A stretch of 63,992 nucleotides of DNA, filler included, from Reticulomyxa filosa (Eukaryota; Protista; Foraminifera): assembly GCA_000512085.1 (NCBI GenBank). It is 9 parts of 9 records of this genome, joined end to end, with 100 filler letters (N's around TTAATTAATTAA, not from the genome) between each part and the next. Parts side by side here need not be neighbours in the genome. Positions count along the whole stretch, not along the records: positions 11,936 to 43,054 come from ASPP01006412.1; 8 more parts are not named here. One strand, given 5' to 3'. Made by a program: the position numbers and the translations under genes. Below are positions 13,191 through 43,054 of the stretch, in pieces. The notes beneath the pieces are model-generated. The model searched no databases. It saw only the letters and a list, made by a program, of their open reading frames with translations, and was not told the DNA's origin. Position 1 is the stretch's first letter. Every line of letters starts with the position of its first letter.

Positions 13191-14287
13191 TTTTATTATG
13201 TTGGCCTGCTGTTGCTCCAAGGTTCCCTTAGAACTTTGGCACTCGTAACAGTGACTTACCCTACAGCAAAAATCGAGCATTTGCGTCGTAAAATTTTAAA
13301 TTTTGTTTTTTTTTTGGACTCTTTAAGTCATGTAAATACTTCTTTAAAAAATTAGTTTAAATCTCTGCAATATACTGTATTAGTCAGTATATTAGATAAT
13401 ATCAAGATTACCTTTCAATAAGTTATCATAACTCATTTAAGATAGTGTAGATTAGTCTGAAAAAACTATACTATTAGATAATCATTAAAGAGTGAACGTA
13501 TAAGTTATTCACAATTTACCTTCCTACAGTTATGCTGTTGGATTAAAAGGTAGCTCTGTTATAATATCATGTCTTCTGCAATAGGAGAATACTTCCTTTG
13601 GACACGTTCGTATGATACTCTTAATTATGTCAATTGCGTAATTGCAGACAAGACTGAAATTGTACTTTCCTTTCATTTTTTAAAAATAATTTGATAAAAT
13701 GAAATGGTGAAAATATTGTTAACGAGTAGACTCACAAATTGAAATGCATTGATGTTGTGCGATCTTCAAAAACGTAAATAATTTTAACTTTTTACAGATT
13801 TTTGAATCAAAGAAATTAATGCTTTCAGTTTTTTGTCAAATAAATGGATATACGCTATTGCGAGAATCCATTGTGCTTTGATGAATTATTTTTGAAAAAT
13901 GTACTTCAAAAAAACTAATTCGAATACAAAGCTCTGTTCATGAAAATTATCATTGTTGTATTGTTACATTCTTTAATTTGGATGAAAGCAGTTACATTTT
14001 TAAAGTGTTTACAAATATTTACTGTATTCAAAAAGTTTATTTTTATTTTTCCACGAGAATGAATTATCAATTGTGTAATTTTTTTTGCGAAACACTCAGG
14101 AATTTACATGGCATGTTGCATGTCCAATAAAAAAACAATGTACAATGCTTTCCTTCCTTCTCTTTCATTCTTTTTATTTAGAAACACAAATCGTTTTCGA
14201 TTCCCTCCAGTTGTGGCTCGTTTGTTCGTTCCATTTTCCCCTTATATGCTTTATTTTTTTTGTTGACAAGTAGAAGTAGTGAATAGA

Positions 14288-17200
14288 TTATGGTCCTCTT
14301 TGGCTGCCATATTGTAGCGATCGTTGCTTTAGTTGAAATCTTTTTACAGTGGCAGACGTGGCGTCAGAGCGCTTACCAGTGGATCTAGCAGAGGAACCTA
14401 AGAAGGACTGACTCGAAGAGACAGCATGCAAGCTTGGACCAACAGTCTGTCTGAATGTGCCAGAGAAAGGTGCAACATCAGTGGTGTCGGGTAGAGTTAT
14501 ATCGTCAGCGCCTTCGGGTTGTTGGGGAAAACGACCACGTTCACTTTTTTCATGACTAAGAGTGTATTGACGATTGAACTTGTAAATGGTGTTTTTGGGG
14601 TTGTAATTTTTGAAATTGGATTTGCCATTGAGATGAAGCTGCAAAGCTGACTGATTGGACAAGTCACTGACATTGACACTGTCTGTGCTGTTGTCACCAG
14701 GGAAGGAAGGAGGAACGAGTAGATCTTTGTCTGAATCCGATACGCTCCTCTCTTTTTCTATTTCGTCGACGACAGACAATACCAAGCCAAAGAATAAATT
14801 GGTGAAGATCAAAGTGACAATAAACATGAACGACATGAAATAAAAAGCCCAGGCGAAGTTATTTGTGGCAATGATGGTTTCGTTCATGATGTTGTTCCAG
14901 CCCTCGCTGACAAGCATTTGGAATAATGACAGCCATGCTTGTGAGACGGAAGAGAAGCCGAAGTAGACAAACGACGAAGAGGTCAATGTCAAATACTCGA
15001 TCTGATTGCCAACCAACGCCGTTCCGAATACTGCATACACGTAGAAGACCAACAACATGAGTATGAGTAAGCTGGAGAATCTTGGAATGACTTTGAACAC
15101 CGTGTACACGGCGGCGCGGGTGGTGCGAATCAACGTAAACATGCGAAGAAGCGGGAAGATCATGGGAATGCGAACCCAAGAGTAGTTTTGCAAGAAGAAG
15201 TTGGAGCCAAAGATTGTCCTGGTCAGAATGAACAGAGTCACGGACACGCACACGATTACCAAATCCAAACGGTGTGCAAACTCGCGATGCAACAGTTCCA
15301 GAGGGTCATCCTTGCGAGGAGGGCCATTCATCATGGTGGGACTATTACTTCCGATATCGGTGCCTGACACCATAAAGCTCGAAAAACTTCGTATCATCAC
15401 TGGATCCGTGGGTGCCTTTGGACTTTGATTTCCAGTTGCCATTGGTATTGTTGTCGTTATGGCTGCTGTTGTTGTCAATGCTATTGGTGCTGGTGTAACT
15501 GGTGCTGCTGGTGTTGTTGCCGTGCTTTGAACCGGTGAGGTGAATTGTGATGTCCCCTGGAGATTCCGCAATGTCTGATTGGCGTCGACGACAGGAATCA
15601 ATGGGATGACACGACACTGACTAATGTTCCAGTAGTACTCCCAGCCATAGACGATCAGTTTGATGAACACATCGAACCCGTTCAGTAACACGCAAATGCC
15701 CAGCATCACATCCAACATCTTCAGCGACAAGAGTCCAGGATATGTCCCGTACATCATCAGCAACATGACTTCGGTGAAAATGATGACCAACACGGCCTGG
15801 TTGAACGATTCCTTTTCGATAATCGACGTGCGCAGCCAAGTGCGGAGGGAGTCGTCTTCGATAATGTCTGTCAATGTCGGTTTGTTGTAGATCTTCTCCA
15901 AATGCAACACGAACTCGTTAATTTCGATTTGGTCGTCTCCATCGTCATCAAAACTTTCAAAGCCCTGTAATCCTCGCACTAATTCTTTCGCCTCTTTCCC
16001 AGGGATGCGTTTCAAGTAGCTAATGAATGCCTCAAACTCGGTTCGAGACACTACATTGTCATTGTCCAAGTTCACCAAGCAAAATGCCGCAATGAACCCT
16101 GTGCGCTTAAAAAATTTCCTTCGCTCTCGTTCGTTACTGTGGATCGAGCTAAATGCTGATTTTGCCAAGCAAACATACGCAAACCGTAACATTTACACAA
16201 AAAAATGAAACGTACATATTTGCAAATACGTATACACGCACACAAAATGTGTGCACGTATAAAATTATACCTTCTTGAAATTTGGACACGACCAATGGAA
16301 TGACAATGAAGGTACCAGCAATGGTAAGTAAAATAAAATAGAGCATGAGAATCTTGGACTCGTCGAGGGACGCATAGACAACGGCTTCATAGTTTTCACC
16401 TGACACCATGAAGATGAAACTTTGCATCATGGAGCGGATAAAGTTGTAAAACGACTCGAGATTGGAATAGTGCAAGAAGATGCCAAAGCGAAAAGTAAGC
16501 GTGCCCGCCACAGCGGCAATGCCCCACACAATGAGATACAGCAACATACCGTCAATGGCCTCGTACATGGTCATGACAAAGGCGTACAGGGCGCCCAAGA
16601 GGTTATCATTGGCCAAAATCAAAATCAAAGGTCTCACATCGAGATATCCGGAGAGAACGACATAGGACACTTGAGCGACGAGTATATCGACAATGACGGC
16701 AATAGTCACAAGCACACGCATGATGAAGATGCGCCTTTGATTTTCCGGAGACACCAATGGATTGGCGTCGTTATCTTGCCATCGGAATTGAATTAGTCCA
16801 GTCATCCAAATATCGAGTATTTCTACAAACACACACAAGCACTCGGTAGTAAGCACTCCTTTACTGTATCCATGGCTGTCACGCAATGTATTTTTGTTGT
16901 ACGATTTCCAAAATGATAATAACAAATGAGCGGTCATGACACAGTGCAAAAACGAAAACCAAATGTTACTGGAATGGAACGAGTACAAACTTAAGCGATA
17001 CCATAAATTCTTTTCAATTTGTTCCATTTGCACCACGGTGATAATGTTCAGTCCTTGCTTTGCTTGCTTAATATGATTCAATGCCCTTCGATGATAATGG
17101 TCTAACATATCTTGCCTCGACGTCGGCCTTTGTCCGACACTCTCGTTTTCGCGCAGCCAACTTTGTAAACATGCATCACGCACCGATTGACGAATGTTTT

Positions 17201-20116
17201 CGGAAATAAACTCCAACACGTTGATATCCGAGTTGATTGCCCATCCACCGTCATTCTTCGACTCCTTTTCTTTGTCCGTCTCACCACCCATAACATTGGC
17301 TAGATCGTTGACATTGCTCTGTGTTTTGAAATGATCACTGCGACCCTTTGCATGTGTCGGCGACTCGACGCTAGGCGGTGGAGGCGACGTTCCTCTCAGC
17401 GCCCTCATCGACTGCGATCTGCCGTTGTTGTTGTTTCTTTCTTTTTCTTGCTTCTCTTCGTATAACACCTTTAGCAACTGCTGTTCCTCCTGCGCAAACA
17501 GCTGAGATTCGTCTAGTCCGTAATGCTTCGTGGGGTAGCCGCTCACGTCATTCCATCCGAGTCGCTTGTTCAGCATTGACAAGTACTCATCCTCCCAGCG
17601 CGTCGTCACTGAGTCAAAGTTACGACGTCCTACGCTGTAGATGTATGACAGTATCTGGTTTAGGTAAACATTTTATCCGTTGTGATTACAAGCAAACCAA
17701 CAAAATAGTTTTGCACAAGTTAAATTGATATGTAATTATAAACATATGCATATATAAATATACACATATATAAACATATATATGTATATATATATTTATA
17801 TTTATATGTAATGTAATAAATACGAGAAAACAAACAACACAAAGCACAAAACAATCAAAGCTCCGCCCACACAAATAATGGCCAAGGCCGCGTATTGCTC
17901 AAAGTCCCCTGTAAACACCTGCAGGGACACACTAAGGACAAAGATCCAGTCCAATTTGGCCCAGTTTTCGTTTTCGGGAATTGTAATGGGGTCTTTGAAG
18001 GAATAGACGCCGATGGCCGGATATCCAAAGATCTGCTTCAGGACGACGAGCTGATACGAGGTTGGAATTTGATCAGGCGACGGCTGGATCAAGTAGTCTG
18101 TGACAGAAGACACGGTGAGATCATCCGTTGTGTCGGCGTGCGTGACGGAATACATTTTCTGTCCGTAAGGGGACTTGGTTTGAGTGATCAAATTGTTTGC
18201 CGTGGACGCGATCAGATACCACTCCGAATCGGATTCGGAGTCGGAACTGGAGTTGGAGCCAGAGGCATTGTCATAGCGCAGATTATATCTGGCATTGGTA
18301 ATTGCAAACATGGAGAAATTCAATTGCGCCATTGTCGACGGCGCCCCATGCGAATGTTTCAAGTACGGCAATCGACTGGCTTGCCAAATTTGATCGATGC
18401 CGATGGCCGAAACTTTTTGAAAGGAAATGAGAACGCCCAAGTAAATAAGTGAGTCGCTACTGTCTTTGTCGAAATGAAGAGTTTGATACAGGCCCAAATA
18501 GCATACAGTTTGGCCATCGAAACACGCGTAGGGTTTGGACCAGGCAATGGTTCCGTTGTGGGATCTCAAATATGATGTCAACTCGTCCGCGGCCGAGACG
18601 ACGGCACAGTCGCGAACATATTTGATGTTGCTGTAGCTATTGTCTACGCTCCAATTGATGCAATCGTCGGTGGTATTGGTATTTAATGACAGTTGGGTGC
18701 CATTGACAGAGGCAAAGGCCGAGGTGATTTGAAGGGTGGAACTGTCGTCGTTTGCATACAATGTATTTTCGACAGTAACAACACCAACGATCTCGTATGA
18801 AGGCCAATACGACGATAAGGAGGACTCAAACTGTGTGGAATTGTGATACAATTGTTGCATGGTGTCTTTGTAGTTTTGCAAAAATAGACGTCCTTTGAAA
18901 TACTCAAACTCCATTCCCAACTCTCCAATTCTCGCGGATATGGAAATAAAGTTTTGCTTAATGTCATCAATGGCATGCGAGGATAAGGTGCGACATCCCA
19001 GATAACTAAAGCCGATGCACAACAACACTAATATAGCCAAAATGGTCTGTACACGTGATGCCATTAATCCCCACTTGGTTTGCCATTGTGATGACTCGCG
19101 ATTGAATATACTTCGCATTAATTGTCTTTTGATATTCGATTGCATTTGCTTTTTTTCCTCTTCTTTTTTCCAATTCTTTATTTCTTTCCGTGCTTGTTTC
19201 AACGATAACTTCCCAACGTCTGCCTTGTCGTCTAATGTCTGTGCACGTTTCGAACGTGCGGGCGGAATGCTGGTCAACTCGAGTGTGTCTTTCGCGTCAT
19301 TGTTTGCAATGTTGTTGTTGTTGTTGTTGTTGTTGATGTTGTCGTTGCCAGTTATCAGATTTCTTGCAGAGTCAGCTGCGTTTACATTGAACTGTACGTC
19401 GTAAATTTCCGTTTTTTTTTGTCCAATTCCAAGGGATGCGCACTTCCCAATGAGTGTCTTCGTTTGCTGGCATTTGGACTCTGGTTGTTATGATTATTAC
19501 TGAAGCCGGGAGTGGTGTTGGTTTCATCTCTTTTGGGGCTGTTGGGAGCATGTCCATTACCAGTGATAGGTGAGGAAGTGGTTGTTTCGATGGTTTTGGG
19601 GTGTTGGTTGAGCTGAGCCAGTTCCATTTCTTGTCCTTGTGCAGACTGTTCATTGGTCATCTTTCGGAACAAATTCACTTTGCTTGCTTCGTTGTTCTTG
19701 TCATCATCGCGATGTATTTCGCGAATTTCGCTTAGCAAATACTCTTTCTGCACTTTGGCCTTGGCTATAGCCTGTTTGCTGTGTGGCTGATGGTCTTCGT
19801 CATCGTCATCCTCCTTGTCAGCGATCGTAAGGAATGGATGTAAGCGATAGCGTTCGTCTCTGGGGATGACAGGCACGGCCTGACTGATAAAGCCTGTGGC
19901 AGCGGCAAACACGCATGCGAAGCAAGTCAAGGCGACGACGACGTTGAACGCGTTGTTGGCATTGCGATGCACTTCCTCGATGGGATACACGACCACACAC
20001 CAAAAGCGCATGAACGACGTGGAAGAAGTGGCAAAGTTGATGCGACGAGTATATACAAAGTACTTGCCAGCACTTTCATACAAATGACCATTGGCATATC
20101 CCACATTATTATTATT

Positions 20117-20153
<37 letters not shown>

Positions 20154-21376
20154 CGTCGTTTCTCCATTTCTTCAAATCTTTGACAGTGTCGACGATCAAT
20201 TTCGACTGAGCCGTTGCCTTACGTCCTTGGCCTGTGCCGAGAGTGCTTGCAGCGCTGCTCAAGGCGATGTTGCTGCCATTACTAACGTGTTCGGTAATTT
20301 GATAGCCCTCATCGCCCATGGAACTCACAAACACGTCGCCGTTGTCGTCGTCGCTAACCCAATACACGACTGCATTGAAACGCAAGTCGAGAGACTTGTA
20401 TTTCATCGAGATTTGCGATGATCGCACAATGACGGCAACCATTTGGTCTCTGTCCGCGTTGTATCGAAGCTGCATCATCCACACGCTCGACGTCGTGCCG
20501 TTTAATGTCTTGTCGTTGAACCAATACAAACGCTGTAAGTCGGCTTCTGCGGCCTCGTTACGATATGCCCACGTATCGTTCAACACTCCGTCCAATGCAT
20601 CCGTTTGGAAAGCCTTACCGACTTGCTGCAATTGCATGCCGGGTGTGTACTTGCGACACGTCAAATTCCCAATAAATCCTTGACACGCTGTCAAATTTCC
20701 CTCTTCCAACATCATCCCTTCTGCATAAGGGACGTTATTGTTTCCATGTTTGATGAATCCAAACACGCCATCGATCGTCGGCTCTACTATCGTTGGCTTG
20801 AAGTAGTTGTTATACAAAATCTCCAACGACGACAAGTTGTTTACTGGCAGCAGTATCGATGTCGAAAAATCGAGAAAACGATGACTCGCAAACAATGACT
20901 GACTTGCGATTGATGCCGTCGAATTCCCTAACACAGCATTGCCCATATTCATTACTCCTTTTACCGTTGCGTATAATGGAAGACTCCTATTCATTTTTTA
21001 AATAATATTAATATTAATAATAATAACAATAATAATAATAATAAAATAAATAAATAACGTAACAACACTTTCCAAGAAATATAACCACTGCTTGCCACAA
21101 CACCAGATAACAAAATAGCCAATGCCAACATGGCAAATGTTAACTCACATTTGTAGCAACAAACCATGTGTCCCTGCTTTGCCGGCTCTTTGGTTGAAGA
21201 CGGCTTTACAGTGTGCTTTTTCATATCCTCGGTCATATCTCCCTCATTCCCTGAGGCTTTGTCTGCTTTCAGCTCCACTTCTTCTTTTTCTGGCTTTGAT
21301 TTGGGTTCAGGTTCGGGTTCGCCTTCAGGTTGCATCAATTCAAACAAAAAGCGCGGTTGCAATCGTTTGACTAACT
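14288..21376 (-). CDS. Two-pore-type cation channel (6TM-EF-hand pair-6TM) preceded by two TM-flanked Cache-like extracytoplasmic modules; multi-exon
   Basis: Channel part: pore loops SFIFMVSGENY and SLFQMLVSEGWNNIM, S6 segments LYFILLTIAGTFIVIPLVV and FYFMSFMFIVTLIFTNLFFGLVL, EF-hands NLDNDNVVSRTEF and DDDGDDQIEINEF. Upstream are two TM-(about 330-350 aa)-TM modules ending FWCVVVYP-TM and LDWIFVLSV-TM, with IAWSKPY in the second. Segments join via short introns and two apparent frameshifts in repeats (about 19415 and 20118). Confidence 0.75.
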
Positions 21377-21484
21377 GACCTAATTGAAAGACCTTTTTTT
21401 TTTTTTTAATTGTTAAAAAAAAAAAATTATTTTTTTTTAATGATAAACATATTAAAATTATTTTTTTAAAAAAAAATACGAAAC

Positions 21485-24366
21485 CATGGATCGTTCAATA
21501 ATTTTGGAAACATATTGCTCAGTGTCCAATAACAACTCCTCCTCTTGGAACGCTCTGGAAAACTCTCGCTTGATGTCAACAGTGCTGAAGAAGCCATAGG
21601 AGGCCACGTTAGACGTGGACGAAGGAGAGAACTCGTTGTTGGCTGTGGTCATATTGCGGAAGAAATCGGCGGGGTTGGCAGTGGTCTGCGTTCTCGTACG
21701 CGGCACAAAGGAGGAGACGTAGTCCGGATACGGGAAGGCCTCCAACTCACTCGGCTTCACGTCCAGCAGTCGACATCCGACCGGCTTGCCACGGACGTGT
21801 CGTTGGAACATGGGCAAGAACGATCTACGGTCCAGGATGTGTCGAGACAATGCAAAGGCAATGTGTTGGAACACTAATTGCGGCTTGTAGCGATACACGA
21901 GCTGCGTGTCATCGACGCGAATGCCAAAGGTTAAATGCACCAACGTTGGCGTGTTGCAAAATCCCAAGTCGTACCACTTGCGCAACGCTGTCTTCTTTCG
22001 TAGTATTATATCATTGCAATTGATATCGGGAATGTGATCTTCCTCGGTCAATGACGGGATTCCTTTGTACCCTTTGATTATCGCTTCTTTCATTATATAC
22101 AATGCATTGCGATTTTCCAAGTCTTTTAGGGTTTTCCCGTTCTCTAGTTGGACTGTTAATGACAGCTGCAATTCTTTTTTTAATTATAGAGAATATTCAA
22201 ATAAATTTATTTATACATATATGAACATAGGAACATAATCAAACCTCCCAGCAAATTGGTTTTGTGAAAACAATGGTAATCTCGATACAACAAAATACAC
22301 AACAAGTTATCAATGGTAAAAATCCATCCACGATTGTCATGTGCGATTGCATTGTCCTCTTTTCGTAAGAATGACATGGCATCAAAGAAATGCGTCATCC
22401 CACCCATTTGCACCGTGTTCCGCGTGTCGCGTTCGTCGTATACAATATTCATCAACTCGCGATAGCAGTGCATTTCGTCTTCGCTCGGGGTCAACTGAAA
22501 CAGCTCTTGAAACACTGTTGGGTTGTTCCAATAGTGCACCACTTCGTAGTAGGACATGCTCAGTGTCGACACACGTTCCTGGATTGCTAGTGACTCCATT
22601 GGCTCATTCTCGCGTGATGTATCACTCCTAATCGATGGGTTGCGTGCGTTCGATTGAGCTCGAGGCATTGGTGTGGCTATATTTCGATCTCGTTGCGGCT
22701 GCATTTTTTTTTTTTTGCAAGACGTGCATGTTGCGTATGTATAAAAAGAGTGACGCATGTACATAGGCTTTGCATCTTGTGTAACTCAAAACACACAAGT
22801 CGAGCAAACTTAACAATGTGACTGAGCTCTTTTTCAATAAGTTGAGATATGCGCATTTTGTTCCATTGGTGCATTCCTTTGGTGCCATATTTGTCCACCC
22901 TTGCAAAAGTTTTTTTTTTATCAAAGAAAAGAATGCCAAAAAAATTTTTAATGACCCTTTTTTTTTTTTTTTAGTTAGTTTTTTTTGTTATGACACAAAG
23001 CAAAGAACATACAAGCGTTTCAATTCAGCTTCAGATGGTTGATTTTTTCTCACTACCTATACAATAGGTAAGCAAATATTGCATATGCACGTGTATATAA
23101 ACAAATGGATCAAATGATTCAATAAAATGGACAAAATATTTGATAAAGAAAAAAAGTTTGCTTAAGGACATTCTCTCGACTGCCAAGTTGTACAAATTTG
23201 CGATACAAAAATTGAATATGTGACGTATGGATAATGGCTTCTCTACGCTTGGGGTCGTTCCATGGATACATAGTCGGGGTTTTTCGTATCTCTTTTTCTA
23301 GTTCATTTTTGACAGCGAATGAGGGAGACAATTGTCCTGCCTTTCCCAAACTCCGTGCTTGATGGTACAAATAATCGGGCAATGTCTCAAAGATATTGTA
23401 CACTTCGCCCCCCCCCCATATACACCAAAAAAAAAAACATTACAGACAATGAGCCCCAATTGTTAATTTTTTTGGTTCTTTGTGTTTTGCAAATAAAAAA
23501 ATAAAAAATGCATATCTAACCTTCTTGTAAATAGTGCAAAGTACAAAATAATCGTCGAATCTCATGCATAACTTCACTAATTTCTACTTCTTGCGACCGC
23601 TTTTCCATAAACACGTTATTAAACACAGGCTTAGTAACATATTTGGCTGCGTACTCATATTGTTCAAAGGTCGGATCGAACGTGGATATGGTTCGATCGC
23701 TCTCGTTAAATTTATTAAACAGTTGAGAGGAAGGAACGGTGTCCACGATCTTTGGTTGCTCTGAACTCGATGGGGGCAATGACAACCCTGCTTCATTATA
23801 TTTGGATTCCATTTCTATTCCAGTGCTCTCATTTTTATTTTCTTGTGTTTCTTTGTCCTGCATGCTGTCTTTCTCGTTCTTATTGTTGTTGCCATTAGCA
23901 TCATCAATTCCATTTTCTTTGACGTCTCCGATATCAAATGAGACCATTTTTTTTTGTAACTTTGATTTGGGATCGCTCTGCTTTCACACAAATATACAAA
24001 CAAAAACTCTTCATTGCTTTCGTGTGTATATTCTACTCAATATTCCTTCCCTATACACACTTCAAAACATGCCATTGCAAGCTGGAGGTCTCCAATTGAT
24101 ACACTTTTCGCCAACTCTTGCAATCTGCTCTGTACCTCCACGCTCGAATTTCTTGCTTCTACATTGGTCATTCGTGGTGCTACGTTGTCCCCACTTGTAT
24201 TAATATTGGCTTCTGTGGTTTCGGTTTTTTCCTCTTTGCTTTGAGTGCTAACATTAGAGACCACTTCGGTTGTTATTTCATTCTTATTGTCAGAGTTTTC
24301 AATTATATCTGTATTATGTTCCTTTGGCGCTTCTGGAACATAACCTGGATCATGCTCTGTTGACAT
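21485..24366 (-). CDS. Upstream exons of unknown function; probably the N-terminal cytosolic part of the same channel gene (ATG 24366), possibly a separate gene
   Basis: Chain of same-strand ORFs (24037-24366, 23516-23947, 23119-23403, 22677-22898, 22207-22764, 21458-22171) separated by roughly 80-130 nt AT-rich gaps. A phase-0 join ERSM|gt...cag|LVKRLQPR into the next exon is possible. Confidence 0.6.
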
Positions 24367-25455: not shown

Positions 25456-28400
25456 AATAATAATAACAACAATTATGACAATGGCCCTCCTACCGTACGT
25501 CCATCGGATCAACTCAACAGTCGCCATTCAAATGAACACTCGGCGAAAAACCAGAGCCAACACACAAAACGCAAAAGTGGTGAAGACCGCCGACACACTG
25601 AGCATGAAAGGCCAACAAAAAGCGTGGAAAGTGTTCACAGCAGTCATAGTGGAACAAGCAGTGCTTCCTATCCATTTCTCAACGATCTCAGGCCGGGAGA
25701 AACCTCCGATATGGTTTTTGCACCTATAACTGCGGAGGAAAATAAAAGGCACTCTTGGATTGAAACTATGAAGAATAGTTTATTTTTCCAAAAAAAAAAG
25801 CTCATTGTTGCATAAATAGTATACGTTTTTTTTAATGTTTTGGGAACAAAAAAAAAAAAAAGAAATGAAATTCGAGAGTGATGATGAAGAAAAAGGTGAA
25901 GCAGAAGACAGCATAGATTATGGTGACAACGAAGATGAAGAGCAAGACGAGAAACGCGAAAAAAAAAGTCGTATTAACAAAAAGAAGAATGATCATAGTA
26001 ACAGTAATGCCAATGTTTTAACGGGTAATAACAGCAACAACAATAACAGTAATAATAACAATAATAATAATAATAGTATTAATAACAGCAATAATAACAG
26101 TAATAATAATAACATTCCTCCAAAAAAGCAAAGTTTGACAAACAATCCCAAAACTCATCCAAAAAAGGGAAGTGACACTGGGACAACACCGATCACGCAC
26201 AGCCAACAAAATCAAGGCTGGACTGGTGAGGTTGGCTTGAGCAACAATGGAAGCGGGAAGACGGGTGCACACAACGTGATATCACTGGCCGCGCTGTCGA
26301 ACGCGAAAGGCAAAGACTCGAAAGAGGAGCAAGGGGAAAAGGAGAATAGCGAAGGGATGGTGCGCTACGACATTGTGTACTTCACGTCCTCGCCGTTGGT
26401 CACAACAACGGTGAATGGCTGGAGTCCATTGACGCAGGTGAATATCAAAGAAGACTGGCAAAAGCTATTTGACACATTGCGCAGTTACGACGTCAAACTC
26501 TGTGTGAAGCATGTGATTGCTACATTTAGTGCAATGATGACTGCCTTTACCAGTGGTTGTCGTGTCATGCACTACTGCGGACATGGGATGTCGCAATCGT
26601 TGATTTTTGAAAATCCAAAAAACATTGGCACCGATCATTCGGTCAGTTGTGACGTCATTCGACGCGCTTGTCGAGATGCCAAGCACGGACCCGAGCTCGT
26701 CTTTGTATGTTCCAATCATAGTGAGATTGTGGGTATGTTTTTTTGTTTTTTGTTTTTTGTTTTTTTTGGAAGAATGGGCTTGCATTTAAAAAAAAAAAAA
26801 AAAGCCAAATTTAAAAAAAAAACATAACATAAATGAGATAAATGATAATTATATGCATATAAACAAAAGGTAAGACATTTGTCGACGCTGGCATAAAACA
26901 CGTGGTTGCAGTCGAAACCGACTTTGAAACTGCCGACGACGCAGCGACAGAATTTACAAATCACTTTTATCACAGTCTATTGAATGGATATGAAATCATT
27001 GACGCTTTCAAACAAGCGAAGAATGCGGTGGTGGGCTTGGCCGGCTCGAGCAAACAGGACGAAAAGAAGTTTGTGTTGTTGCCATTAGACCCAAGTGGTC
27101 GATTGCATCGTGTCAAAGTGTTTCGACACGATCAACTGGTATCGGGACAACTGGTCGACGACAGTCTGCCTCTCCCTCCCAATAATCTGCCACCTCCTAT
27201 CTCGCACTTTATCAATCGAAATGTGGACATGGCGCGTGTGATTGAACACCTGTTGGACAGCGGAGTGAAAATTGTGGATTTGACCGGAGGAGAAGGCATT
27301 GGAAAATCGGCCGTCGCAGTGATGACGGCGAGATACTTGTGCTATCGAGGAGTGTTCAAAGGTGGAGTATTTTATATTGACGTGGCGAAGCTGATGAAGA
27401 CGCACACCACACTCAAATCAATGTTTGTGCACACGCTCAAGTCGAGTGAGAGATATCGCAATATTTCCGAGGCTGAGTTCTTTGGCAAAGTCCACGACTT
27501 TGATCGAATGTTGTTGGTATTCGACAATTTGGAAAATTTTTCGATTCATTACGATGACAATGAAACGGATCAAAAACTGCACAGCTTGCACGAGGGACAA
27601 GAAGACGCAATGTTGACCGTCGAAGGGGAAGACGATCACATGTATTCGCGCTATCATCACAACAATGGTAATGGGAACAATAACAATGCGAATAATGCGA
27701 GCAATGTCAACAATAATAACAACAACGACTATGACAATGACAGCGATGGAGAAGAGAATGATCCGAATGATGACGGCAATGACAATGAGTATCGCAAAAA
27801 ATTTGGTAATAAAAAACTTCGAAAAAACTCGCACAAAACCAAAGAGGCTATTGACAGTTTCTTAAATGCTCTCTTTGATCTGACCAGAAATGAAATTAAA
27901 GTACTCATTACTTCCGACAAACGCAATGACAAAAATATCCGTGGCATCACTCGAATGTATCAACTGCCGCTATTAACGCCCGAAGACTCAGCCAAACTGT
28001 TCACACGCTTGGCCAATCAGTTCCAATGGAAAAAGGTGCTCGAAAACAACGAGTTGATGGCCTTATTTCAAAATAACCCCGGCAACATCGACAAAATCGC
28101 CCGTCTGAAACATATGTTCGACTGTGATGATCTGGAGAAATTGATCCACACATACAATCACAAGAAAATGCTGGAAATTCGATTTGGTAAGTCTGGCAGC
28201 GTGCATCGTCGACACAAACCCAAACCTCCTTCCAAATCCCCGTCTTTGGCAGATGAACACATCCTCGATCCCGAAGCGCGCAAAGTGTGGATTAAAGCCA
28301 ATGGAGGGAAAACAGCATCTTTCAAAGCCTTGTTCGAACAAATGCGGAAAAAGTTTGAACAAGTCTCGTCTTTACGTCCTTTGAAAGAAAGTGACATTTT

Positions 28401-28982
28401 AGAAGTTTGCAAGAATCAACTCGACAGTCAAAATAATCTCAGCATCGAAAAGTTCGAAAATCTGTATATTTGGTTTGCGGGAATATGCGAGTTGGTCAAA
28501 GCGTTGAAAGATTTGTGGGTTGATACCAATCCAGTTAAAATTCATGGTTTCATTGGTCGAACCGAAGCCGAGCAAAAACTACAAGTTAATTTTTTTTCAA
28601 TCTTTTTTTTTTTGTAAGTGCGTCGAAGAAAGTAAACATCTGTTCTTTTTCTCTTATAACATACACTTGCATCATGTCTGCACCGCATTGAAATGTTTTG
28701 CAAACGACAACGTCGGCAAAACCTGGCACGTTTTTAATAAGATTCAGTACTACCCAAGAACGCTCAATTGCAATTTCGTACAGAGAAGATAATAGTCACA
28801 ATAGCATGCCAGTGCAACATATCAGTGCATATTTGACAGGCGAGAAAACTTTCCTATTTAAAGGGCATGACTACCCTTTCAAGTTATCTCAGTTCATTAC
28901 TCACTATGCCACATTCAAATATTTGTACTGCGAAAATCAAGTCATTCCTAAAGTTGAGGTTTTTTGGGGATCATCAATGTAG
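24525..28982 (+). CDS. NLR-like protein: low-complexity N-terminus + CHAT (caspase-fold) domain + STAND/NB-ARC-like NTPase + STAT-type linker-SH2; multi-exon
   Basis: CHAT: VMHYCGHG, LIFE, ELVFVCSNHSEIVG|KTFVDAGIKHVVAV...AATEFTNHFYHSLLNG...AFKQAK (intron 26733-26869). STAND: NNLP...FINR, Walker A GGEGIGKS, GGVFYID, Walker B LLVFDNLE, KVLITS, LPLLTPEDSAKLF, NNP. SH2: LW...IHGFIGRTEAEQKL...PGTFLIRFS...IAISY. Start is approximate, and no clean AG acceptor is visible for the last intron. Confidence 0.85.
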
Positions 28983-30492: not shown

Positions 30493-32126
30493 ATGGCTTC
30501 ATTGTGGAATAGTGCAGAGGTTACATCTGGAAGTGGTAAACAAGGAAAGGAGCAGAACTTCAATCACAATGGCAAGGTACCTGACAAAGATACTTCTAAC
30601 CATTTATCACAAAAACGGCCCGAGCATGTATCTTTTTAAAACCTTTTTTTTTTTTTGCTTCTTTTCATAAAATTATACGTCATTGTCATAGATTTTTTTT
30701 TGTCTGACCGCCCTCCTCAAAAAAAAATTTTTTAAGTATTGATGGCTTCACTTTGCAAACGTTGCACATTGTAACCTTTAAAAATATCGATAAAAAATGA
30801 CACAGGAAAGTCGAAGTCAGCAAAATTTGACAATAGAAGAACCAAACTCGAAACCGACGAAAATAACGGCGCGGTCGCTATTCGATCTGACACAGTTTCG
30901 CGATGTTGACGCAGGAATTCGTTTGACTAACAGTTGGGCGATTATCACAGAGCCAAGTGTAGATGAAGTATTTGTGAGAGGAAAAGATTACATGGAAACC
31001 TCACAAAAAATTAATGTCAGTTTTTTTTTTTTTGGTCACCTCCTCCCCTCCCCTTTTTTTTTCCCCCTCTCCCCCCCCACTCTCTTGCTCCTGTCCAAAT
31101 GTTTGAGTAAAAAAAAAGAAAAAAAAATAGTCAGAAAGTATATTGTTTCCATTGGTGGCAGCAGAGTGTCTGCGCACCCCTGTACGCATTGACCATTTGG
31201 CGCAAAGCAAATATCACACTTGGTTTCATGACCACATTGACCCCGATGACAAGAACATATTTGTGTTGATAATTCAATTGCAAGTGCAATCGGTGAATGC
31301 CACTTTTGTACATTACCATGTTTGGGAAGGGGGATTGCCCATCAAAACAGATAGTACACAGTTCAATCAACTGTTCTCGGAAATATTGGACGGCGGTGAC
31401 GATTTTCGAAACGCGCGACTTAAGTTGATACCACGTATCGTCAATGGACCATTTGCTGTGCAAGCGATGGTAAAAAATAGTCCCGTTTTGTTGGGAACAA
31501 AAGTCAAGCATCGTTATTTCCGAGGAAAAAATTATTTTGAAATCGACAGCGAAGTGGACGAATCATATATTTCTGCTGGTTATTTACATTACATATATAC
31601 ATATATGTATGTATGTTAATTTATACACTGTTCGGAAAATAATTTTTTTTTTTGAAATGATGTTGTTACAATAGGGGTGTTGAAACTCTGCCATCGCTTC
31701 AGTCGCAGCATTGTGGTCGATATGTGCTGGGTGATTGAGGGACAAAAGGAAGAAGAATTACCAGAACGGGTAATGTGCGGTATCACCATACACAACCTCG
31801 ACTTTAGTAAGATCACGGATATCCCTTCTTTAAATCAAAATAAACTGTCTTGGAAGCAAAAAAAAGAAGATCATGAAAGCAAACAAAACAGTAGTGATAT
31901 CTCCACGGCTCAAAATTTGCGTAGCAACAGTCCACATGATGTGGAGGAAAACAGCAACAGTCCACATGATGTGGAGGAAAACAGCACCACTGCTGAGACC
32001 TACGAGTTAATGAAAAGCCACACCTTAACTGATTCACGCTCGCAATCCACCCATCCTTTTCAAAGAATGTATTCAGCCAATCAAACTGAAGAGACAGAGG
32101 AAAAGGCAGAACGAGAGGGAGATTGA
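30493..32126 (+). CDS. EDR2 C-terminal (DUF1336) domain protein, multi-exon
   Basis: FVRGKDYM, GDDFRNARLKLIPRIVNGPF.V, PVLLG, YFRGKNYFEID, VVDMCWVIEGQKEEELPERVM. Start tentative. Confidence 0.85.
31923..31985 (+). repeat. 30-bp coding tandem duplication (SNSPHDVEEN x2)
   Basis: agcaacagtccacatgatgtggaggaaaac occurs twice in tandem. Confidence 0.9.
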
Positions 32127-32778: not shown

Positions 32779-35291
32779 ATGTCAGTTGGTATAGATTTGG
32801 GAACTCAATTCTCAAAGGTAGCTGTTGGGTGCCATAAAAAAATATCGATGGTTTCAAATGAGCAATCAAAATTCGAGACAGCGACAATGGTGGGCTACAC
32901 AGACAAGCAGCGTGACATAGGAGAGGCAGCAGAGACAGTGCTCAGCCGCAACTATAAGAATACAGTTTGCCAAGTGAAGCGATATTTGGGAAGACAAGCA
33001 GATGACCCACTACTAGCAGAGGAGTTGGCCAAATGGAACTATTGCAAAGTGAGCCACAGCAATGAAGGAGCCATATCATTTTGTGTGGCAACCTCTAAAG
33101 GAAAGAGAGAGGTGTTACCAGAGCAAGTGTTGTGTACATACCTGAGACAATTGAAAGAGGTATTTGTTTGTTTTTGTTATGATAAGAAGAGAACTTTTTT
33201 TTTTTTTTCCCTACGAAAAACCGCAAAGATAGATTATTTGCGAATGCAATTTAAAAATACATATATATGCATATATATATGTGTATATATATTTACAAAA
33301 CAAAAGTTTATGCTCTTTTTCTTTAATCGAAACTTTTTTTTTTCCTTCCCTTTTTTTTTTTTTTTTTTTTTTTGGTAATTAAAACAATGATAAACCAGTT
33401 TGCAGCGAAGCAAGCAGAAGGAGCAGCAATAAAAGACTGCGTAATAACATGTCCGGTGTATTACACAGACGCACAGCGAAGGTCGTTGATGGCAGCAGCG
33501 ACAATAGCGGAGCTGAACGTGCTACGCATACTGAACGAGCCAACGGCCACGGCACTGTCGTACGGGATGAACCGGCAATTGAAAGAACCTCGACGAGTGA
33601 TGTTTGTGGACATTGGATACAGCAATACGCAAGTGAGTATTGTGGATTTTGGGAGCAACTCGCTGGTGATGTACGCAAGCAGCAGCGACGCGTATTTGGG
33701 TGCGAGGGATTTCGACTACGCATTATTCGAGCATTTCCGCAAGCAGTTGGAAGGCATGCATCCGTCGATCGAACTGAAGAACGAGCCACGAGCGAGACTG
33801 CGACTAATGATTGGAGTGGAACGGCTGAAGAAAATGTTAAGCGGCAACAAAGATGCCGTGGTGGTGTTGGAGTGTTTGGTGGACGATAAAGACTTTACGT
33901 TGCGAATGACTCGAGAGGAATTTGACGATTTGTGTGTGTCGCTGATCGTTCAATTGTCTCAATGTGTGACTCGAGCAGTGACCGATATGAGACAACGAGA
34001 CACTGGCGGCTCTTTCTACTCCTCTCTCCCCCATTTGCAATTCGCGTCACCGTACACGTCTCACCCCTCACCGCTGACTATTCACAGCGTCGAAATCACC
34101 GGTGGAGGCAGTCGCATCCGCTGTGTCCAAGACGGACTGCTCACCATCTTGCAAGAATGCATCCCCGAAGCCTCCATCGACAAACTCTGCACCACTTTGA
34201 ATGGAGATGAATGCGTGGCTCGTGGGGCCTCCTTGATGTGTGCCATGTTGTCCCCGTCCTTCCAAGTCAGAGACTTTCAAGTCTACGAACATGTTGTCTG
34301 GCCCATTGCCATTGCCTATCCTTCTTTACTCGCTTTGTCGTCGACCTCTCCATCCTCCTTCCATGTCGTCTTCCCTCGATACACTCTGTTTCCGTGCGTC
34401 GCCAAAATCGCTTTTTATAAACAACAAACCTTTGAAGTCTCTTTCCAATACTCGTCGCATTATGACAATGTCTGTCAAAAGGATAATCAAGAAGCCGATG
34501 AAAAGATAGATTGTAATAACAATGACAATAACAATGACAATAACAATGGTAATAATCATCATTATGATAACAATAACAACAACAATATTAATAATAATAA
34601 CCCAGTCCAACTACCAATGAAATGTCTTTCTCAAATTGCAAAATGCAAAATTGAAGTACCTACGCTGTCACCCAACGCAGTTGAAGAGCCTCAAGTCAAA
34701 CTCATTGTATCTGTCAATAGACACGGCTTGTTGGAATTGCCACAAGCACAATTGATCGAATTCGTTGAGACACCGCAAACTGTCGCTTCTGGTGGTGCAA
34801 CTGCATCCTCAAGTTTTTTTTTTTTTTTTTTTTTTGTCTTCGATCTGATTATATTGCGTGTGTTGTGACTCGAGAGCAGACAACAAGTCGGGAGACATGA
34901 ATGGCACGGATACATCACCGGAAGAAAAGAACGCAAACGGGCCGACACAAGGAACGGAGAATGAAGAGAAGCAGACGGAGGCAGGTGTGGACACGTCAAG
35001 CAAACCAAAGAGCAAAGAAAAAATCGTGCGCAGTTTATCGGTGAGCGGAAGCTTTGATGCAGAGATTCCCAAGGACAAACTAAGAGAGTGGAAGGAATTG
35101 GAAAATGAATTAGCAACAATCGACAATCTCATCAAAGAAACAAATGAAAAGAGAAATGAGTTGGAAACCTATATTTACGACATGCGAAACAAATTGGAAG
35201 GCACACACAAGGATTTCATGAGCGAAGAAGACAAAGAAAAATACCTCGCGCAACTTGATCAAGTTGGCCAGTGGTTGGATGAAAGTTACAT

Positions 35292-35329
<38 letters not shown>

Positions 35330-36011
35330 TTATATTGTTATGCATATCTTGGTTTTAATTTCCACGAAATGATGACTCGTAATAATTGCAAAACACAGCC
35401 GAGTATGCCAATAAGGACGAATGCATCAAGAAACTGCAGGAATTAAAAGTGGTGGGACAGTCAATGTTAAGTCGGCATTGGGAAGCAGAACATCGACCAC
35501 AGAGAGTCCAAAAATTGCAGCAGTTGATCATGGAATATCAACAAATTGCTGACAATGAGAATGATTATTCCCATCTCACTTCACAAGAACGTAGCATGCT
35601 TCGTCAAGCGATTGACGAGGCAGATGCGTGGCTATTACATCAAATCACACTCCAACAACAATGCGAATTGTATCAATCTCCTGTTGTATTGTGCTCCGAC
35701 TTTGACGCTAAATACGTTTCGCTTCTTTTTATTGATCTATATACATACGTCTGTGTTCTTGCTTCATTTCCTTGTTGCTTAAAAAAAAAAATTAAAAAAT
35801 TTTATGGTAGTACGAATTAATGACTAAATGCCAGCCGATTGTGACAAAACCAAAGCCACAAATTGATAATCCCAATGATATAATTCAAAGTAATGATGGC
35901 AATGAGAACCAAATCAATCCAAATCAAGAACAGGTTGCGGTCATTGAGAATAATGAAATTATCGACCAACCCCTTCCGCAACATGCCTCGTCAGATGATA
36001 CCACGAAATGA
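32779..36011 (+). CDS. HSP110: Hsp110/SSE-subfamily Hsp70 chaperone (nucleotide exchange factor), multi-exon
   Basis: VGIDLG, DCVITCPVYYTDAQRR, NEPTATALSYG, LGARDFD, VEITGGGSRI, TTLNGDECVARGASLMCAMLSPSFQVRDF, acidic loop, EKRNELETYIYDMR. Confidence 0.93.
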
Positions 36012-36732: not shown

Positions 36733-38622
36733 ATGGAAAAGACGGAAACGACTCAAAAGACGAGTTTTGGATTGCAAGCGCCGAACAAGCGCCGGGGAGC
36801 GAATGTAAAGAAAAAAGGGATGACAATCAAGCCATTTAAAGGTAGGCAGAAAATAAGAGGAGCAGAGAGTTGTGGTGTGTAAGAATGATTAACAAAGATT
36901 ACCAAAAAAAAAAATGTTTTGTGAGAACAGAACAGCCAAAGCTCGACGCAAACTTTGAAAAAGACACAGTAACGAAGTTGATCGAAGCAGTGGAAGCAGT
37001 TTTTGAAAAGAAAGCTGCGAATTGTAGTTTTGAAGAATTATACAAAGTTAGAAAAAAAAATAAATAAATATATGTATTATATATATGTATATATATAATA
37101 CATATATTTATTTACTTTTGGTTGTTTGAACAAAAAAAAAACAAAACAAAACAAAACAAGGCCTGTCAATCCTTATGCACATTGAAAAAAGGCAAGCAAG
37201 TGTATGACGGGTTGTATGAAGTATGTGACAAGCACATAAAAAAAAGCATTGAGAAATACATCGACACGAGCATAAGCCACTCGCAGTCGTACTTGGAGCC
37301 CTTTAAGAATATCTGGATGCGCCATTGCGAAGAGATGAACGCGATCCGACAAATCTTTCTGTTGTTGGATAAGACGTATGTGAAGACATCGACGGACATG
37401 AAGTCGTTGTGGAACATGGGTATCCATTTGTTGAAGAAGCACATCTTAGCCAAAGAAAATGCATGTTCGAATCTGGTTGTTCACTTGTTGCAGTTGATCG
37501 AAAACGAAAGGAACGGCGAGCAAATCGACCAAGACTTGTTGAAGCCCATCATTCAAATGGTTTCGTACTTGGACCTTTATCAATCCACTTTCGAGCCTCG
37601 TTGTGTTATTTCTTTACTACTCGCATTTTTTTTTTTTTTTTTTGTCAGTAGATTTTTTTCTTCTTACTACTTTACACATTGAATTCAATTGAATTGAATG
37701 GATAGAATTAATCAAGGCTTCCACCAAATACTATGAAAACGAAGGGAACAATTTCGTTGCAACAATGAGCATTCCCGATTACTTGTTGCATGTCCGAAAA
37801 AGGCTAAAAGAAGAGGTGATTTTTTTTTTTTTTTCCCAATGTGTATATTATATTTATATAATATGATAGGTACATTATTATTTACATATATACATATACA
37901 TATATACATATATATACATATATATATTATATGTGTATTAAACATAGGAAAAACGAGTGAAAAACTATTTGGAAGCACAAACGCAACGTCCGATAACACT
38001 GCTGATAGAACACGAAATGATAAAGAAACATGTGGAAGACTTATTGACGAAAGGCTTCGATTCGATGATGGACGAGTCCAAGTTTGCCAACTTGCGGCAT
38101 TTGTACGAACTGCTGTTCAGCGTGCAGGAAGTCGACGCCTTGCAACAACACTTCAGTGAGTATGGCAAGAAGCGCGGAGTGGACATAATCTCGGACCCTT
38201 CTCTCGACGCGCAGAATGAAATGGTCGCGTCGCTGCTGAAGTTTAAAGCCAAATTGGACCGCGTCGTCAACGAGTCCTTCCACAACCATCGCACCTTTCA
38301 TCACACGATCCGCAACTCATGGGAGTACTTTTTGAACATCAAACCCGATAAACCTGCCGAACTCATTGCCAAAGTTTCTTTTGAAATTTTTTTTGACAAA
38401 GCAATTATTCCAATATGCATATGTGTGTATCTACGTATCTTAACACACAGTTCATAGATCATCAGCTGCGCACAGGAGCTCGCGGGACCAGCGAACAAGA
38501 GCTTGAAGAGTCCTTGGATCGAGTAATGGATATTTTTCGCTTTATTCATGCCAAAGATGTGTTCCAAGCGTTTTACAAAAAGGACTTGGCTAAAGTTTTG
38601 TTTGAAGAGTATACCGTATATA

Positions 38623-42360: not shown

Positions 42361-43054
42361 TTACTGTCCCCAAATACGGATAAAACCATTGGATGAGCCA
42401 TAACATAGTTTAATACAATCACTAGTATCACTTTTTTGTTTAATTTTATTTTTTAATTGAAAAAATTTAATACACAATATTTTGTCTTCTCCTTTATTAT
42501 CACCTTTAATAACGTGTAATCTCTTTTTATTTGTTCGAATATCCCAAAAACGAACTATACCATCATCTGCTCCAGAACATATCACATTATAATTATTTCT
42601 TGTTACAAGTGGTGAATATTCGACAACATTTACACTTTTTATATGTCCATTAAATATTTGAACTTGTTTACCAGAACGAAGATCCCATAAACGAATACTT
42701 TTATCTGATGATGAAGAAAATATTAAATTTTCATGTAATCCATATTTTACGCAAGTTATTTTTTCTTCATGTCCTTTCAATACACTACATTGTTTAGTTG
42801 TTTCAATATCCCAAATACTAATAGTTTTATCAGCTGATCCAGAACAAATAGTATATCCATTACCACCAATTAAACCAATACTGTTGCTTTTATTATTATC
42901 ATCATTAAAACTATAACTTTGTAATGGTGAAATATCAACACACCAAACACTATCTTTATGTTCATTAAAAGTATGTAATAATTTTGATGTTTCCATATCC
43001 CATAAACGGACGGTTTTGTCATCAGATCCAGAACACAAATATCTACCACCATTA
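42361..43054 (-). CDS. WD40-repeat protein, 3' part
   Basis: Repeats CSGSDDKTVRLWD, CSGSADKTISIWD, SSSSDKSIRLWD, CSGADDGIVRFWD, plus the lineage-type insert SNSIGLIGGNGYTICSGS. Confidence 0.95.

Follow-up and report, generated by a model that had tools for sequence, protein, structure and literature searches.

A predicted foraminiferal protein joins two double-Cache ectodomains to a two-repeat cation channel

Reticulomyxa filosa is a naked freshwater foraminifer. A stretch of 63,992 nucleotides from its genome (the window) includes, at positions 11936-43054, contig C6412 (ASPP01006412.1; 31,119 bp), whose minus strand carries the gene described here. GenBank divides this gene between two models: RFI_08245 (1479 aa; 22557-17805) and a separate 'cation transporter' (1066 aa; 17576-14107). 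An initial annotation of the window read a single exon chain, an apparent fusion of two Cache-like sensor modules to a two-pore-type ion channel. Comparison with paralogs and other foraminifera, together with structure modelling, now points to one gene for a giant sensor-channel protein: two double-Cache (dCache) ectodomains, each set between transmembrane (TM) helices, followed by two six-transmembrane (6TM) channel repeats. RFI_08245 and its neighbour are very probably a single gene.

The gene and its parts

The minus-strand exon chain was found at the noted place, with all six open reading frames (ORFs) present in the noted order:

20994-21362, minus: ORF A, carrying TM1
19930-20994, minus: ORF B, ectodomain 1
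19385-20104, minus: ORF C, FWCVVVYP, TM2, and linker
17805-19277, minus: ORF D, linker, TM3, WSKPY ectodomain, LDWIFVLSV, and TM4
16152-17609, minus: ORF E, 6TM repeat I
14291-16192, minus: ORF F, EF-hands and 6TM repeat II (Pfam Ion_trans, E 8e-23)

The gene comprises six exons running from 22704 to 14291, with five introns of 71-189 nt, all GT-AG, and a stop codon at 14288-14290. Its product of ~2,620 residues reads, in order: the N-domain; TM1, ectodomain 1, and TM2; a linker; TM3, ectodomain 2, and TM4; ~230 cytosolic residues; 6TM repeat I; a putative EF-hand pair; and 6TM repeat II. The gene begins further upstream than the limit of 21376 first assigned to it: the start ATG is at 22702-22704, and two additional exons (22245-22704 and 21485-22173) precede that limit. 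Three junctions had been singled out for checking. The one at 17610-17810 is a true intron (17635-17823); those at ~20118 and ~19415 are frame breaks inside one exon. The parts are as follows:

22245-22704, minus: exon 1, start ATG and first part of the cytosolic N-domain; kept in paralogs and in Nonionella protein P0006
22174-22244, minus: intron 1, 71 nt, GT..AG, 83% AT; junction peptide ..TNLLGELQLSL.. is the same as in the intronless paralog L011
21485-22173, minus: exon 2, second part of the cytosolic N-domain; kept in paralogs and Nonionella
21393-21484, minus: intron 2, 92 nt, GT..AG, 92% AT
21064-21392, minus: exon 3, acidic cytosolic stretch, CCxKC motif, and TM1 (~21072-21140)
20987-21063, minus: intron 3, 77 nt, GT..AG; junction ..SWKVLSLPLYATVKG.. 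is continuous sequence in paralogs L011 and L012
17824-20986, minus: exon 4, dCache module 1 through TM4, with two frame changes
19952-20986, minus: dCache module 1 (predicted, extracytosolic), with a frame break at ~20117-20118; fold modelled on paralog L011
19880-19951, minus: TM2, immediately following FWCVVVYP
19059-19879, minus: cytosolic TM2-TM3 linker, largely low complexity; AVPVIPxDERYRLHPF kept after TM2, and a conserved basic helix before TM3
18993-19058, minus: TM3
17898-18992, minus: dCache module 2 (predicted, extracytosolic), with AWSKPYxCFxG motif, 4 cysteines, and 8 sequons
17826-17897, minus: TM4
17635-17823, minus: intron 4, 189 nt, GT..AG, 78% AT, correct phase; site of the GenBank two-gene split
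16271-17634, minus: exon 5, conserved post-TM4 peptide SVGRRNFDSVTTRWEDEYL, cytosolic pre-channel region, and repeat I (~16281-16967; filter SGEN at 16392-16403)
16156-16270, minus: intron 5, 115 nt, GT..AG; not present in paralog C7367
14291-16155, minus: exon 6, putative EF-hand pair (~15893-16090), repeat II (~14738-15802; filter SEGW; Pfam Ion_trans), and C-terminal tail

Searches and fold predictions were run exon by exon or with intronless paralogs rather than on the joined spliced protein. Introns other than intron 4 have GT..AG ends, 67-92% AT, and junction peptides equal to those of intronless paralogs. The exon 3 peptide V.QL..LV..LQP.F.FE, which lies upstream of any Met, is kept in paralogs L011 and L012.

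The N-domain (21485-22704, minus) spans ~380 residues, with motifs TPxEDEMxCY, LRKEDNAIAHxNRGWIFxIDN, and KGYxGIPSL. It is conserved in the R. filosa paralogs and in P0006, and it has no match in Pfam or in the PDB profile search. The CCxKC cysteine cluster (21147-21161, minus) right before TM1 is kept from R. filosa to Nonionella (GHxxCCxxC), and may be an acylation or metal-binding site. Within the low-complexity TM2-TM3 linker, RRHSLGS (19442-19462, minus), a basophilic-kinase-type site, is kept in three paralogs.

One chain in paralogs and other species

Same-genome searches covered the 102-Mb R. filosa assembly (50,809 contigs), first with pieces B, D, E, and F, then by tblastn of all six pieces on the fetched loci. 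Their order and strand are repeated on contigs C10848, C22100, C12705, and C20344, at 47-85% identity to the window. C12705 (locus L011) and C20344 (L012) hold the N-terminal half, stopping at the contig edge; C7367 (L013) and C5331 (L014) hold the channel half, starting at the end of TM4 with the same post-TM4 peptide. All four of these contigs start or end at the AT-rich intron after TM4, and each of the pairs C12705 with C7367 and C20344 with C5331 may be two halves of one gene broken by assembly.

Several paralogs read through the window junctions without interruption. On C12705, a single 1257-aa frame runs from before TM1 to TM4, spanning pieces A through D; on C7367, a single 1000-aa frame opens at the end of TM4 and takes in both channel repeats, spanning E and F. 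The decisive gap, 17610-17810, is bridged on C10848 by an uninterrupted 397-aa frame (...KLDWIFVLSVSEQVFSGDFDQYAALGVICVGGALIILAYIYSVGRRNFDFVITQWEDEYL...) that leads out of ectodomain 2, across TM4, and on into the N-terminal end of the channel half; the Nonionella, Bolivina, and metagenome proteins described below also read across it without a break. Splicing window intron 4 gives ...CFVLFVF-S-VGRRNFDSVTTRWEDEYL, which matches the paralog sequence. Each junction of the window gene lies in an unbroken frame in at least one of at least four paralogous loci. Because these paralogs lack the window introns and keep continuous frames, the window junctions are supported as parts of one chain.

A profile of ectodomain 2, run against 1.84 billion representative proteins, found nine: five fragmentary R. 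filosa models; one each from Nonionella stella and Bolivina argentea; and two from metagenomes. A third metagenome protein, P0010, was found as a cluster member. The N. stella protein P0006 (2,886 aa, EukProt) shows every one of the eight window pieces (N1, N2, and A-F) in collinear order, and the B. argentea protein P0007 (1,609 aa, EukProt) shows B through F; both contain Ion_trans. The fusion is present in both. (The two EukProt sets presumably derive from transcriptome data of Gomaa et al. 2021.) The post-TM4 peptide (RRF..NI..WE.LY) is kept in the Nonionella, Bolivina, and metagenome proteins. The three metagenome proteins (P0008, P0009, and P0010; JGI, ENA contigs) share the dCache2-TM4-channel junction at ~24% identity and presumably come from uncultured foraminifera.

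Judged by collinearity, recurrence of the piece order in at least four other loci and two other species is far beyond chance, and the comparison shows the predicted architecture to be conserved in at least five R. filosa loci, in Nonionella, and in Bolivina. Word-based homologue searches matched R. filosa only. The family so defined is restricted to foraminifera: the ectodomain 2 profile matches only named foraminifera or metagenome contigs.

These comparisons correct the public gene models, merging RFI_08245 with the 'cation transporter'; models of the paralogs are likewise fragmented or misnamed. For example, P0005 (ETO11738.1, on C22100; L009) is a GenBank 'HECT domain-containing family protein', but it has no HECT match in Pfam and represents the dCache1-linker-dCache2 stretch of a paralog. 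The GenBank channel model for the window bypasses the stop at 14288 to reach an extra 45-aa exon (14107-14241, minus). This exon is doubtful, because the paralogs all end soon after ..SLQYGSQRG, as does the plain window ORF.

Ectodomains

The two ectodomain modules are 330-365 aa long. Four observations place them outside the cytosol, each between two TM helices: hydropathy; the flanking helices of the models; enrichment of N-x-S/T sequons (7 in ectodomain 1 and 8 in ectodomain 2, whereas the TM2-TM3 linker has 3 and cytosolic segments of the N-terminal part have 0-1); and the coverage of shape matches in the ESM Atlas.

Models were built by AlphaFold2 without templates, from foraminiferal alignments that are shallow (12 and 8 rows). 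Ectodomain 2 (window 17826-19157) was modelled with a predicted local distance difference test score (pLDDT) of 75 and a predicted template-modelling score (pTM) of 0.69; ectodomain 1, modelled on the intact paralog (L011:2199-3401), gave pLDDT 66.5 and pTM 0.60. In both models, a long stalk helix at the N-terminus carries two PAS-like alpha/beta modules in tandem. In Foldseek searches of the PDB, the best 50 matches to ectodomain 2 are all dCache ligand-binding domains (best E 8e-6), and the best 50 to the ectodomain 1 paralog nearly all so (best E 7e-6), the exceptions being a few FixL PAS chains and one low-probability unrelated row. VIA-align gave ectodomain 2 Z scores of 15.7 with 9kp3_B (238 residues, 3.9 A) and 14.7 with 6ioq (234/236, 3.4 A), and the ectodomain 1 paralog 15.6 with 3lie_B (243/262 residues, 3.5 A).

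In shape searches of the ESM Atlas, TM-dCache-TM receptors aligned over 300-350 residues that take in both TM helices (template-modelling scores 0.55-0.66 for ectodomain 2); the matches include a heterolobosean guanylate-cyclase cluster. Protein language-model features also put both loops near Cache clusters, with scores of 0.95-0.96 that serve as a lead only. The Cache fold first proposed for both loops is borne out by these models, in which the top matches are dCache domains at VIA Z ~15, and both ectodomains very probably adopt it. [quoted passage not shown] The two ectodomains have no detectable sequence similarity to each other (BLASTP E 3.3; hhalign probability 0.2%), and so do not reflect a recent duplication.

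Channel half

Hydropathy reveals two sets of six segments, and Ion_trans matches in two stretches both in the C7367 paralog and in P0006. Repeat I of the window has no Pfam match even at E<=1. Its profile, compared with the whole PDB sequence set, gave human TPC2 repeat I as its only match (E 0.0018); the 240 aligned columns include the pore helix and S6. In alignment with CaV3.3, the Glu of the repeat II filter, SEGW, falls on the E/E/D/D selectivity residues; the repeat I filter, SGEN, stands where TPC2 has TANN. Between the repeats lies the EF-hand pair, a weak Pfam match (EF-hand_6, E 5e-4, 20 bits versus a 25-bit cutoff; EF-hand_7, E 2.4e-3) whose second loop, DDDGDDQIEINE, is canonical by eye. 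A Thr/Pro/Ala-rich insert of ~110 residues in the S2-S3 loop of repeat II (15293-15625, minus) varies between paralogs.

The two-pore type originally proposed for this half is supported by its architecture and by repeat I, which matches TPC2 only; repeat II is closer to CaV3 than to two-pore channels (TPCs). A TPC-related, two-repeat channel is nonetheless the likely identity, and Glu in both SGEN and SEGW suggests permeability to Ca2+. The best reading is thus a putatively Ca2+-permeable, TPC-related channel of two repeats.

Proposed mechanism and alternatives

In the mechanism we propose, the protein would form dimers as TPCs do, so that a single pore carries four dCache modules on its extracellular or luminal face. 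The pore, with Glu in both filters, would conduct Ca2+. Small molecules would occupy the membrane-distal dCache pockets, and this occupancy would be relayed to the channel by way of TM2/TM4 and the post-TM4 peptide (RRNF..WEDEY). Channel gating would then combine the chemical cue, cytosolic Ca2+ (through the EF-hands), and perhaps voltage. Four TM helices precede the channel; its N-terminus is therefore predicted to be cytosolic, and the topology is consistent. We assign a probability of about 0.65 to the reading as a whole: one gene for a foraminifer-specific giant sensor-channel protein.

Several points weigh against it. We infer splicing in R. filosa from comparison. Exon 4 switches frame twice, by one base each time. 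The fold evidence consists of AlphaFold2 models of moderate confidence built from shallow alignments. No Pfam Cache model matches B, C, D, or the 1183-aa paralog module, even at E<=1. Repeat II finds its best match in CaV3 repeat IV (2e-30), ahead of AtTPC1 repeat II (3e-13). Finally, the amino-acid-binding motif of dCache_1AA, compared by eye in what we take to be its PctA-type form (Y..R.WY..Y..D), is not kept: the position of the Arg is variable in foraminifera (R/Q/T), and that of the Trp is a conserved Cys. In dCache_1AA this AA_motif lies in the distal module, and its C-terminal part reads Y[x~27-34]D (PMC8915833).

The first two points bear on whether the window holds an intact single gene. 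Two neighbouring genes, one ending at 17805 and the other beginning at 17576, are what the public annotation describes, and frame D does have a stop after TM4, with a Met downstream in frame E. That division, however, falls exactly at intron 4, a 189-nt gap with GT..AG ends and correct phase, and GenBank thereby omits 58 nt of exon 5 that encode conserved SVGRRNFDSVTTRWEDEYLS, in frame with TM4 on C10848. The same peptide starts C7367 and C5331 and is found in three other foraminiferal proteins, and a single 2886-aa Nonionella protein covers all the pieces; two genes are accordingly most improbable. The frame changes raise another alternative: the family would be real but the window copy a pseudogene, its two breaks within one exon being true mutations. 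Break 1, in dCache module 1, is at ~20117-20118 within (AAT)10-AC-(AAT)4; break 2, in the linker, is at an A9 run (19412-19420), the sole exonic homopolymer of at least 8 bases in the gene. Both are thus in slippage- or error-prone runs. Homologous paralog sequence carries on in the other frame on either side of each, and the length of exon 4 fits one base missing per site. If the two shifts are set aside, the ~2,620 codons are free of in-frame stops; similar isolated breaks in the paralogs, beside short homopolymers, argue for assembly error. A pseudogene is on balance unlikely, and the breaks are probably errors of an assembly presumably made from 454 reads. (Two splicing solutions were rejected: a 32-nt intron at ~20090-20120 would remove GYANGHLYES, homologous to coding sequence in all paralogs; for micro-introns of 17 to 22 nt at ~19400, the paralog alignment puts the shift within the A9 run.)

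The remaining question is what the ectodomains do. The main rival to the proposed mechanism makes the dCache modules a built-in auxiliary part like alpha2-delta/CACHD1, serving folding, trafficking, surface anchoring, or extracellular contacts rather than ligand gating. Animal dCache domains do accompany CaV channels as alpha2-delta, whose main effects are on channel trafficking and on the kinetics of gating (PMC8915833, PMC9901441). The foraminiferal modules do not visibly carry the amino-acid-binding motif, and a structural ectodomain would agree with their conserved cysteines and numerous sequons. Yet both modules are built as TM-dCache-TM cassettes, as signalling receptors are. The modules are not a VWA-containing alpha2-delta, and Pfam found no VWA domain in the window pieces or in the paralog and module sequences scanned. 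The post-TM4 peptide is conserved across foraminifera, as expected of a coupling element. The auxiliary role is a somewhat unlikely alternative, and sensor-to-channel coupling is favoured because the cassettes resemble receptor input modules and the TM4-channel segment is conserved. Ligand gating of the channel by the dCache modules is itself a tentative proposal, held at somewhat less than even odds. A further reading, also rather unlikely, is a natural chemoreceptor-channel, in which a Cache sensor would directly gate a Ca2+-permeable, TPC-like pore in one chain and foraminifera would convert extracellular or vacuolar cues to Ca2+ signals. If true, such a protein might serve, for example, in steering reticulopodial motility or feeding, and the partnership of Cache and channel would have arisen independently of animal alpha2-delta.

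Neighbouring genes

The ORFs around the gene on C6412 are those of ordinary eukaryotic genes:

26902-28614, plus: NB-ARC-like ORF (E 4e-5, slightly under cutoff)
31143-31616, plus: EDR2_C ORF
32779-35355, plus: HSP70, split over three ORFs
37122-38454, plus: cullin, in two ORFs
42364-43038, minus: WD40 repeat protein, cut at the contig end

Comparison with known systems

Two-pore channels (TPC1, TPC2, and plant TPC1) resemble the foraminiferal protein in having two 6TM Ion_trans repeats per chain, and the repeat I profile matches TPC2. Plant TPC1 has an EF-hand pair between its repeats, where the foraminiferal protein has a candidate pair. Unlike TPCs, the foraminiferal protein is extended at its N-terminus by ~1,600 residues, which include four TM helices and two predicted dCache ectodomains; its filters are SGEN and SEGW, with Glu, whereas those of the TPC type are Asn-rich; and repeat II is nearer to CaV3 repeat IV.

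The alpha2-delta and CACHD1 proteins of CaV channels likewise bring an extracytosolic dCache fold together with a voltage-gated-type cation channel. However, alpha2-delta forms a subunit of its own, in which a VWA domain is inserted and the dCache domains are nested (PMC8915833), whereas the foraminiferal protein has two independent TM-hairpin cassettes, covalently part of the channel chain and with no detectable sequence similarity to alpha2-delta. Known eukaryotic dCache_1AA proteins are mostly alpha2-delta-like, with the VWA insertion (PMC8915833).

Bacterial and archaeal TM-dCache-TM receptors offer a whole-cassette match of the modelled structures, including both TM helices. These receptors include methyl-accepting chemotaxis proteins (MCPs; PctA, TlpQ, and Mlp24), histidine kinases, and diguanylate cyclases. 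In the foraminiferal protein, by contrast, the predicted output is not a HAMP domain, kinase, or cyclase but an ion channel belonging to the same chain; the cassettes are in tandem; and the host is eukaryotic.

Covalent fusion of a Cache sensor to a channel has a precedent in the prokaryotic Cys-loop (ART-LGIC) channels with MCP-N/Cache domains (Tasneem et al. 2004, PMC549065). Those channels are pentameric, prokaryotic, and unrelated to the voltage-gated superfamily, and they are the only Cache-channel fusions known so far (PMC549065). Literature searches on foraminiferal channels, on Cache-channel fusions, and on dCache domains with two-pore channels turned up no description of the architecture found here, in keeping with the earlier impression that it was not familiar from characterised proteins. 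As far as these searches show, covalent linkage of Cache sensors to a voltage-gated-superfamily channel has no earlier example.

This sensor-channel fusion parallels the non-covalent pairing of alpha2-delta with CaV channels in animals. It provides a single-chain system for asking how Cache domains communicate with channels of this type, and it might be used as a scaffold for Ca2+ channels under ligand control.

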